Notes under the pieces: model-generated
The model's database searches: none
The model's input: the letters and a program-made list of their open reading frames with translations, nothing else
What the model was told of the DNA's origin: nothing
Part shown: piece after piece, positions 43,301 through 46,262 of the stretch
Layout: the number at the start of each line of letters is the position of its first letter
How positions within the stretch are numbered: the first letter of the stretch is position 1
DNA from: Salpingoeca rosetta
Taxonomy: Eukaryota > Protista > Choanoflagellata
NCBI GenBank assembly: GCA_033442325.1
Contig: JAWQFM010000033.1
Location: 189,372 to 237,587, forward strand
Length of the DNA stretch: 48,216 bases
Direction of reading: 5' to 3'
Made by a program: the position numbers and the translations under genes

Positions 43301-46262
43301 CACAGTCCCGCGCATGCTCGCTGTCATCGCCAACATCAGCGTCAACGTCGGGCGTGTCGCCGCCGTCCGCCACAAAGCAATCGTCACCGCCGCTGTTGTC
43401 GCACGCCCCCTACTCCTCGGCTGGCCAGGCACACGTTGATGCCAACGCCAACATCAGCGCCAACACTCACATGACCACCAACGTCAGTAGCATGACCACG
43501 AACAGCAATTGCAGGCGCCACCACGCCCGCAGCCAGCACATGGTCCACAGCAGTGGCAACGGTGGTGACATGTCATCGTTATCACTGCCAGTGCAACCAT
43601 CGACGGCAACAGCGACGACAGCGACGACAGCGACAACAGCAGCCATGATGTCGTGCATGCCGGAACTGAACCGTCTCATTGCCACAGCGGGGACAGGTGC
43701 AGGACACACGCACCCCATGCCACACACGCAGGTCTCCACACCACAGCACAGCATGCATTCCACACTACTACCGATGACACGACCGCAGATGCCGCAGCCA
43801 CACGCGACACAGTCGATGGCTGGGCATGTGCCCGGTGCAAACGCGTCCGCATCACCCTCGATGGTCCCGGACGCCGCGTACCGAACACTCGCTGCTGCTG
43901 CTGCTGCTGCTGCTGTGCCACAGTCCTGCACGCAACAACCACAACCACAACAACAACACCAACAACATCAACAACATCAGCACCAACAACAACGACAACA
44001 ACAACACAGCCACCACCAACAGCATCAACACCAACACCAACAATCCCAACACCAGCATCAGCCGTCCAGTATGGGACCAGAGAAGCTTGCGTTCATGTCA
44101 GCGGTTCAGCAGTTTTTGTCTGGCGGTCTCAACACACAGCAGCCGCTCAACACGTCCGCACACGCGCCGCTGGCACCTGCTGATGAGCCTTTGTTGCACC
44201 CACAACAACACTACCATCACCAGCAGCAGCAGCAGCAGTTCCAACAGACGCAGGCATCATCACAGCAGCAATACCATCGTCACCAACACCAACAGCAGCA
44301 ACAACACGCTCAGCTACTGTCGTGGCTGTCCTCCGCTGTGCTTGACCACCAGCAGCAGCATTACCACCACCAGCACCACCAGCACCATCAGCACCATCAG
44401 CGACCAACGCAACCAATGGATGCCGTGGAGCAACAGGCCGGTTCGTTGCTGTTGTCTGTGCAACGTGGTGCATTTCCCACCACCACCGCCACCAACAACA
44501 ACAACAGCAACAACGACATCAGCACGCACAACAACGCTTGCAGCGCCAGCGACAGCAGTGCCAGTAACAGCAACGGGACCGCTGGTCAGCGCCAGGCGCT
44601 GGCGTACTACCTCAACACGAATGGTGATGGTGATGGTGGCGGCGACGATGAGGACGACGATGACGATGATGATGGCTGTGATGACTCACACGACCAGCCC
44701 TTACTCAACATCACCTTCAGCTGCCCCAACAAACCCACGACCACCAACACCACCAACGCGACCACGACAAGCAACACCACCACTGCTGCCGCAGCGAACA
44801 CGGCGCCCGCCACCGCTTCGCACACTGGCGGCGCCGTCCCGACGGACAGCGGTGACGAGCTGGTGTGCCCCATCTGCACAGGGCCCGGCCGCTCCTCAGA
44901 CTCACGGTGCGACCCACATGCTGTGATGCACTGCCGTGTTTTGCTTTTGTGTGTGTGTGTGTGTGTGTGTGTGTGTGTGTGTGTGTGTGTGTGTGTGTGT
45001 GTGTGTGTGTGTGTGTGTTCACCCGATTTAGCCCGAGTGTGCGTGTGTCTCTGTTTTCTGAACATGTGTGCGATTGAGCCCCAATGTGCTTGTCTTGCTT
45101 TTGTTGTCCTTTGAGCCACAACCAACCACGCGTGAGCCTCACATTTCACACCTCCGACTCCCCATCCCCCTTCCTCCTCTGCAGCATCTGCCCCGTGTGC
45201 TATGCCGGGCTGTACAACGACATTCGCAAGTGGACCCGCGAGGTCCCCGATGGCGTTTCCCACCTCTCCGGCAACGTCGAATTTGACATCCCCCAGTTTA
45301 TGCACGGTACGTGTGTGTGTGTGTGCGTGTCTGCACGTGTGCGTGTGTGTGTCTGCACGTGTGCGTGTGTGCGTGTCTGCACGTGTGCGTGTGTGTGTGT
45401 GTGTGTCTGCACGTGTGCGCGTGCGCGTGTTTGTCTCTGTGTCTCATGTGACTCCTGTAACCATGTGTTTGTCATGTGCACTCGTTACATATTAACTCAC
45501 AACTCAACACGCGCACTCGTTGTTGCTCGCGCAATCTCACCTCCACCCCCTCCTTGCACGTTGTCGTGCACGACATTCAGACCTGCGAGAGCGCATTCCG
45601 CGCGGGTGCCGCAACGGCTACAACTGCTCGCTCTCGGCCTACCAATACGGCGTCAGCCCACGTGCGTACACTGCCCCCTTCTCGCCTCCTTGCCTGTCTG
45701 TTTGTCTCTTTTGTGTTTGCTGGATCGTCGTTGTTTGTTGTATCTGCGTTGTGGTTTTCTTCTTGCACGTTGGGTGTGCGTACAGTGCTCCGCATCCCCA
45801 TCATGCACTGTGCCCACCCCATACTCACACACACACACATACACACCACCTCCACAACCACTGTTGCCACACTGTTCCTCCACCACCTCCTCGTTGTTCA
45901 CATGTGTCACTGTTCCGCCAGGCGACCGGTGCACGCGCTGCCGCTCGCTCGCCATCTGCCGCATCTTGCCAGACGTCGTCCATGGAAGTGAGTCCTCAGC
46001 ACACACGGACATACGCAGACTCACTCACTCACTCACTCACTCACTCACTCACTCACTCACTCACTCACTCACTCACTCACTCACTCACTCACTCACTCAC
46101 TCACTCACTCACTCACTCACTCACTCACTCACTCACTCACTCACTCACTCACTCACTCACGCACGCACTCACACTTACTCAACACACTGCCACTACACCA
46201 CGGGTACCACTACGCGTTCAGTGCTCTTCAACACAAACCGTTCCCGCCGCACAGCGAGCTGA
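40361..46262 (+). CDS. large Q/H/S-rich putative transcription factor with C-terminal double C4 zinc finger, 6 exons, ~1439 aa
   Basis: Exons: 40361-40799, 41303-44906, 45185-45306, 45581-45661, 45922-45987, 46255-46262; phase-consistent GT-AG. Long polyQ tracts and NLS-like PATKRPKL. C-terminus CPIC-x11-CPVC-x44-CRNGYNC-x14-CTRCR-x4-C. Confidence 0.75.
40855..41060. repeat. imperfect intronic minisatellite (unit about GTGCTCGCCTGCATGTGCTCGCTGTGCATTCGTTCG, ~3 copies)
   Basis: Recurrent motif seen near 40868, 40925 and 41010. Confidence 0.6.
41518..41751 (+). repeat. (CAA/CAG)n coding repeat, ~78-residue polyQ
   Basis: Seen directly; a second tract lies at about 42226-42345. Confidence 0.95.
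46018..46160. repeat. (CACT)n tetranucleotide microsatellite in an intron
   Basis: Seen directly. Confidence 0.95.

Follow-up and report, generated by a model that had tools for sequence, protein, structure and literature searches.

Does a choanoflagellate gene encode a relative of the nuclear receptor (NR) DNA-binding domain (DBD)? NRs are regarded as an innovation of animals, the origin of their DBD is an open question, and choanoflagellates are the sister group of animals. The gene in question lies in the 48,216 nucleotides of Salpingoeca rosetta DNA analyzed here (contig JAWQFM010000033.1, positions 189,372 to 237,587, forward strand; G000:C33:189372-237587 in the 55.4 Mb assembly that was searched). 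This whole stretch is called the window, and positions without a contig label refer to it. An initial annotation made from the DNA letters described a NR-like double C4 zinc finger of nine cysteines, split across several exons between 44866 and 46262 of an apparently non-animal genome. The split finger is borne out: its exons join in frame at GT-AG junctions, and the spliced tail gives a 125–129-bit match to a profile of related proteins. The genome is that of S. rosetta, since the product of a paralog is identical to NCBI XP_004993592.1, PTSG_12352 of this species. The domain is NR-DBD-like in architecture, yet it is not a member of the Pfam family zf-C4 (PF00105). Our preferred reading, to which we give a probability of roughly 0.55, is a NR-like-fold DNA-binding module of lineage-specific transcription regulators.

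The features of the gene, in window coordinates, are the following.
40361 to 40799, + strand: probable first coding exon, with its ATG at 40361, Q-rich at first and acidic later, and a GTATGT donor at 40800.
41303 to 44906, + strand: large low-complexity exon with polyQ, S/T-rich segments, acidic runs, and a KRPK basic patch.
44907 to 45184, + strand: intron 2, GTGCGA...CAG, phase 2, containing a run of (GT)n.
45185 to 45306, + strand: exon with the second Cys pair (ICPVCY.GLYNDIRKW), the start of helix 1, and the first part of a family-specific helical insert.
45307 to 45580, + strand: intron 3, GTACGT...CAG, phase 1, at an identical position in six other reconstructed paralogs.
45581 to 45661, + strand: exon encoding the last part of the insert, followed by the third Cys pair (..IPRGC-x5-C..).
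45662 to 45921, + strand: intron 4, GTGCGT...CAG, phase 1.
45922 to 45987, + strand: exon encoding the fourth Cys pair and the first part of the second main helix (RDRCTRCRSLAICRILPDVVHG).
45988 to 46221, + strand: last intron, GTGAGT...CAG, phase 1, containing the (CACT)n array of 46019-46160.
46222 to 46262, + strand: probable terminal exon encoding MLFNTNRSRRTAS, with TGA at 46260-46262; it extends a basic C-terminal helix.

A 1311-codon open frame (41179-45114) has a Cys pair at its end, followed by the GT-rich intron. Joining the large exon to the three middle exons and the small last exon keeps the frame, with GT...AG at all junctions. The connection of exon 1 to 41303 is the sole frame-keeping donor/acceptor pair that has a good donor, and we infer that the start codon is at 40361. 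The final 41 bases of the large exon (44866-44906) encode the first Cys pair as CPIC.G.GR.S, a CP.C.G.GR.S motif common to the paralogs, and the first Cys codon of the domain is at 44866. The spliced product reads CPIC-x11-CPVC, with CPVCY.GLYNDIRKW at the second pair, has 44 residues between the second and third pairs, and ends with PRGC-x5-C-x14-CTRCR and a further Cys five residues on. The whole protein has about 1450 residues and is polyQ- and S/T-rich. Pfam detects no domain in the large low-complexity exon or in the product as a whole.

The last acceptor in the initial annotation, at 46255, is probably wrong. The same stop codon is reached from an acceptor at 46222, which scores 128.9 bits on the family profile compared to 124.7 bits for 46255 (+4.2 bits). 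In four paralogs (L005, L006, L008, and L010), the tail likewise continues as a [ML][LIV] helix, and that of L008 is identical to the tail of the NCBI model PTSG_05628. On sequence grounds, the last junction is thus probably 45987-46222 (...VVHG-MLFNTNRSRRTAS) rather than 45987-46255 (...VVHG-TS). Microsatellites occupy 44930-45020, 45310-45440, 46019-46160, and 46330-46361, in the introns and at the 3' end of the gene; they comprise (GT)n, GT-rich repeats, the ~140-base (CACT)n array, and a poly-C/poly-A run right after the stop. Many sequencing runs, guessed to be RNA, contain 0.34-0.45 of the stretch's words, near its estimated exonic share of ~0.45, but this agreement is not evidence of splicing.

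The reality of the domain was examined with a profile built from an alignment (A2) of 19 family members, taken from other genes and species only and leaving out the window gene. This profile scores 124.7 bits on the spliced tail that ends with the 46255 acceptor and crosses junctions 1-3 gap-free there. A genome search with exon 2 retrieved paralogs that share IC..CY.G.YNDI.KW, a local tblastn search found seven paralogous loci in which the four exon pieces are all present and identically ordered, and scanning the genome with the profile yields about 16-18 S. rosetta loci. In the six loci that were reconstructed, the tested junctions are all GT-AG at the positions and phases of the window gene, except for one first-exon donor that was misplaced in the reconstruction. 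Most paralogs have the intron positions of the window gene. Intron 2 is identical in position and phase in L004, L008, L009, and L010 and is missing from L005 and L013, and intron 4 is missing from L009, L013, and L025, where its flanking sides are contiguous. Within the domain, the first intron is absent from L005, the second from L021, and the third from L009. The paralogs L013 (contig C13) and L025 (contig C25) carry the entire domain within one open frame, which establishes the collinear join with no assumption about splicing. The domain is also contiguous in spliced transcriptome open reading frames (ORFs) of other choanoflagellates. A MAFFT alignment of the exon fragments stacked all CxxC motifs on one another and was set aside. 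In the profile scan, two family exons 25 kb apart on contig C30 (460368-460484 and 485108-485224, both - strand) have identical scores, suggestive of recent segmental duplication of one paralog.

The family extends to other choanoflagellates. A phmmer search with the L013 domain against 1.84 billion representatives returned 25 proteins at E ≤ 0.001. The named homologs are choanoflagellate proteins without exception, annotated as hypothetical, and the few unnamed ones are metagenomic. The S. rosetta homologs found are PTSG_12352, 02264, 07689, 00329, and 05628. Further homologs are transcriptome ORFs from S. infusionum, S. kvevrii, Microstomoeca roanoka, Choanoeca perplexa, Hartaetosiga balthica, and H. 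gracilis. A homology search with the low-complexity body of the window protein returned nothing, its words being swamped by low complexity, and one with the L013 open frame limited to the domain was likewise empty, probably owing to a length filter. A homolog search with alignment A2 returned just two short known members and no PF00105-bearing bridge. The domain is mostly at the extreme C terminus of Q-rich proteins and sometimes at their start, and 10 full-length members contain no other Pfam domain. These comparisons confirm the spliced eight-Cys tail as real, far beyond chance. By the same searches, the domain defines a family that has been found so far only in choanoflagellates, is undescribed, and is invisible to Pfam.

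The database models of two paralogs look incomplete. PTSG_12352 begins inside a 757-codon open frame, and PTSG_05628 leaves out the exon that encodes the fourth Cys pair. The database matches do not include the gene of the window itself. A distant, intronless member of the family is encoded on an 8.3 kb Logan contig (SRR26909563; L027, gene at 2970-4319). Its 449-residue protein (P0020) is from an environmental eukaryote and has the domain near its N terminus, and related copies (the P0021 cluster) occur in ENA and JGI metagenomes.

Eight of the nine cysteines in the initial annotation are conserved in nine S. rosetta paralogs and in the 19 family members. The ninth (..AIC) is not. The family spacing is C-x2-C-x10/11-C-x2-C-x42-50-C-x4-6-C-x13-15-C-x2-C, and the fourth Cys is followed by the consensus Y-S-G-L-Y-N-D-I-x-K. 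In the 19 members, the invariant residues are seven of the Cys, the Tyr that comes directly after the fourth one, and a Pro; the second Cys, an Asp (that of YND), and an Arg are nearly so. The CTRCR sequence and the Pro ten residues downstream of it are invariant or nearly invariant. The net charge of the domain ranges from +5 to +14 with a mean of +10, and the positive charge is concentrated in the loop of the first Cys module (module I), in the PRGC...[KR]CTRCR segment of the second (module II), and in the C-terminal helix. The stop codon falls 25-35 residues past the last Cys pair, so the protein ends after the domain. The absence of a LBD after the finger, as first described, therefore holds, and an exon-wise scan of the genome with PF00104 (Hormone_recep), which has low power, gave no match.

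The structure of the domain was predicted by AlphaFold2 with the 19-row alignment. The model is compact, with a mean predicted local distance difference test (pLDDT) score of 94.3 and a predicted template modeling (pTM) score of 0.85. The cysteines are at model positions 9/12, 24/27, 67/73, and 86/89. Helices run from the second pair (25-41), through the insert (43-48 and 53-62), from the last pair (87-97), and at the C terminus (99-121). With high model confidence, the prediction has two sequential C4 zinc sites, each a knuckle and a helix starting at the second Cys pair of its module. That ligation is sequential is deduced from the match of the model to NR DBDs. The two helices are predicted, at the same confidence, to pack as in the NR DBD (a double treble clef), with a 25-30-residue helical insert between the modules and a long basic C-terminal helix located where the C-terminal extension of TR and VDR sits. 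In a Foldseek search of the PDB, NR DBDs fill the first 47 rows, with probabilities up to 0.99, target-normalized template modeling (TM) scores up to 0.69, and a root mean square deviation of ~3.1 Å. In the ESM Atlas, zf-C4 clusters come first (TM 0.49-0.52), and ComF-type double zinc ribbons and archaeal hypothetical proteins come next (0.40-0.47). NR DBDs are also at the top when the Foldseek matches are re-scored by VIA-align and in a Foldseek-independent VIA-align search. The structural matches cover the NR domain almost completely at 17-23% identity. The folds GATA, LIM, RING, and Zn2Cys6, named with the initial annotation as possible better fits, do not occur among the 50 best rows of the PDB fold searches, and neither does MYND.

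Sequence comparison gives a different picture, and several results weigh against the NR-like reading. The likeness to zf-C4 seen in the initial annotation does not extend to the Pfam model (curated cut-off, 21.1 bits): PF00105 does not match the contiguous paralog L013 at E ≤ 10, where there is no Pfam match at all, and does not match any of the 19 family members at E ≤ 1. The family profile matches no nuclear receptor among all PDB sequences at E ≤ 10. Its best match there is the eS31 zinc ribbon, over module II only, at E 0.07. An alignment by hhalign of the family with three NR DBDs, a lead-level test, gives P 0.007-0.06 and probabilities of 1-6%. The double zinc ribbon model DZR_2 (PF18912; curated cut-off, 27 bits) matches 12 of the 19 members weakly over module I, with a best E of 0.0034 and all scores below the cut-off. 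Language-model features are a weak pointer (0.89) to zf-MYND. Helix 1 carries Y-S-G-L-Y-N-D, with its invariant Tyr and nearly invariant Asp, where NRs have K-G-F-F-K-R. The structural evidence has its own weak points: the Foldseek E-values for the NR DBD matches are 0.3-3, the confident model is a prediction from 19 sequences, and the single-sequence AlphaFold2 model is poor (pLDDT 51) and was not used.

Other sequence searches add little. Removal of the 30-residue insert leaves the hhalign probability at ≤6%, though all eight cysteines are then in register. At E ≤ 1, 20 Pfam families are matched by any of the 19 members, among them one match to a RING model (E 0.85). A six-frame scan of the genome with PF00105 has no match that touches the window. 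NCBIfam and a phmmer search of the PDB returned nothing. DUF4459 (PF14673; curated cut-off, 27 bits) was considered and rejected. It scores 18.2 bits on exon 2 alone and 15.3 in the genome scan, is absent from the matches of the 19 members, and was not reproduced; a paper search on DUF4459 returned nothing.

The comparison with the NR DBD (zf-C4; RXR, ERR-gamma, TR4, and TR-beta) defines what is shared. The canonical NR DBD spacing is C-x2-C-x13-C-x2-C-x15-17-C-x5-C-x9-C-x2-C, and the NR recognition helix carries the motif C-E/G-G-C-K-G-F-F-[KR]-R, which contains the P-box and the basic contacts. NR DBDs bind hexameric DNA half-sites and dimerize by way of the D-box. Both domains have eight cysteines in four pairs and in the same order, a C-x5-C in module II, a basic [KR]C..CR that opens the second main helix, and a strongly basic character. 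In the model, they also share a knuckle and helix per module, with the helix beginning at the second pair, and the placement of the C-terminal helix corresponds to that of the TR/VDR extension helix. The differences in linkers and P-box recorded in the initial annotation stand. The spacers are x10-11, x42-50, and x13-15 in the choanoflagellate family compared to x13, x15-17, and x9 in NRs, and only the C-x5-C knuckle agrees. The family has the 25-30-residue helical insert, has Y-S-G-L-Y-N-D-I in helix 1 rather than K-G-F-F-[KR]-R, does not conserve the ninth Cys, and has no hidden Markov model or profile similarity to the NR DBD. Because the helix 1 residues differ, the base and phosphate contacts of NRs are not conserved. 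Tyr and Asp in place of Lys and Arg on the would-be recognition helix mean that any DNA recognition must differ in detail from that of NRs. Compared to a whole nuclear receptor, the choanoflagellate proteins lack a LBD and usually place the domain at the C-terminal extreme of a Q-rich protein.

In the favored reading, the region encodes a C-terminal domain of ~110 residues and eight cysteines in an otherwise disordered, Q-rich S. rosetta protein. The domain would bind two zinc ions and also nucleic acid, with DNA as the likeliest target, through basic surfaces in the module I loop, module II, and the C-terminal helix. The Q-rich remainder would be a regulatory region, and the proteins would be LBD-less, lineage-specific transcription regulators.

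One explanation of this resemblance is that the family is a true remote homolog of the NR DBD, so that it and animal zf-C4 both derive from one pre-metazoan double-C4 domain. The choanoflagellate branch would have gained the helical insert and lost the P-box-type helix, and the animal branch would have been fused to a LBD. The Cys order, the C-x5-C knuckle, and the [KR]C..CR at the second main helix argue for it, as do the first rank of NR DBDs in all four structure comparisons and the position of choanoflagellates next to animals. LBD-less Pfam zf-C4 sequences have been reported in choanoflagellates (PMC6792448), and a separate S. rosetta gene on contig C23 has a sub-threshold zf-C4 match. 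However, the Pfam, PDB profile, and hhalign searches are negative, all three spacers differ, and the hallmark helix 1 residues are absent. Convergence is recurrent among small zinc-held folds, and the family has no profile similarity to the C23 sequence. Of the proposal that the domain is a divergent relative of the NR DBD, the closeness of the predicted fold and the lack of a LBD stand, and membership of zf-C4 does not. Common ancestry with NR DBDs is plausible but unproven, and we place it a little short of even odds.

A second explanation is that the domain consists of two C4 zinc ribbons or knuckles of independent origin with a helical linker, unrelated to NRs and used for protein-protein or RNA binding instead of sequence-specific DNA binding, and that its NR-like packing is convergent or reflects a predictor bias in favor of known folds. 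DZR_2 (ComF-type) resembles module I in its C-x2-C-x10-12-C-x2-C, the eS31/S27a zinc ribbon resembles module II in its C-x4/5-C-x14-C-x2-C, and each has the weak sequence match to the family described above. The bacterial ComF-type double zinc ribbons and archaeal proteins in the Atlas, the zf-MYND-like language-model features, and the conservation of acidic and polar residues along the helix that would serve for recognition are consistent with this explanation. However, the DZR_2 and eS31 matches are below cut-offs and each covers only half of the domain, and these ribbons lack the inter-module helices and the NR-like packing. They are outranked by NR DBDs in every fold search. The strong basic charge of the domain, and host proteins that look like transcription regulators in being Q-rich with no other domain, also speak against an independent ribbon pair, which we consider rather less likely than not.

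That the domain is a canonical zf-C4 member, a real NR DBD hidden by introns, draws on the Cys order and the motif comparison of the initial annotation only. It is refuted, as far as the curated zf-C4 model goes, by L013 and the 19 members, by the genome scan that misses the window, and by the absence of PF00104 matches in the genome, and is very improbable. Chance Cys codons in noncoding DNA or a mis-spliced artifact are refuted by homology and have a negligible probability, given 125–129 bits on an independent family profile, conserved intron positions, intronless paralogs, and transcriptome ORFs.

The general idea of a pre-animal NR DBD is already published, and the link made here is a predicted structure at grey-zone scores. 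Lopez-Escardo et al. (2019) reported Pfam zf-C4 alone, with no Hormone_recep, in choanoflagellates and concluded that the DBD predates animals (PMC6792448); the text gives neither species nor protein names for these sequences. A later paper repeats the report (PMC8942334). Like the present proteins with their NR-like domain, the published ones have no Hormone_recep, but they were found by a Pfam model that is blind to the present family. Because Pfam does not detect it, the published zf-C4 matches are probably other proteins. The C23 gene (C23:207860-208108, - strand; L029:3861-4109, - strand) may be a likelier counterpart of them than the window's family. The N terminus of its 886-codon open frame is Cys-rich and has NR-like motifs, C..C...CTYCIKFF...RHCFGCLYQRCLDVG. 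Its PF00105 score of 15.4 bits (E 0.027) falls short of the cut-off, and the Atlas feature clusters closest to it are those of zf-C4, weakly, at 0.79. The gene is single-copy. Another PF00105 match, at C31:210311-210472 (+ strand; L001:1501-1662), reaches 25 bits and is over the cut-off, but it lacks half of the Cys, every second one, and lies in a frame that looks noncoding (poly-L, poly-E); it is probably a chance match.

The published choanoflagellate hint rests on Pfam matches without further description (PMC6792448), and the present work gives a concrete, conserved, and expanded family. The family might be a surviving sister lineage of the NR DBD: a stand-alone double-treble-clef DBD of Q-rich regulators would have existed before animals and later been fused to a LBD in animals. 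We regard this scenario as tentative and closer to doubtful than to probable. If it is true, the origin of NR DNA recognition would be testable in the tractable S. rosetta. A real relationship would show the domain as it was before animals, stand-alone, with no ligand sensor and a different recognition helix, and the S. rosetta repertoire would gain perhaps 16-18 unrecognized candidate transcription factors. Were the resemblance convergent instead, the family would still be a new two-zinc domain family specific to choanoflagellates.

Four other open frames in the window have recognizable domains. The frame at 2751-3989 (+ strand) has DUF5074 and Kelch-like matches. A 1349-codon frame at 4686-8732 (+ strand) has a Receptor L domain and BspA-type leucine-rich repeats and is probably a surface receptor-like protein. 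The frame at 12780-14405 (- strand) has COR-A and COR-B domains (C-terminal of Roc) and is part of a ROCO-type protein. The frame at 33230-34807 (+ strand) contains a piece of an adenylate/guanylate cyclase catalytic domain.

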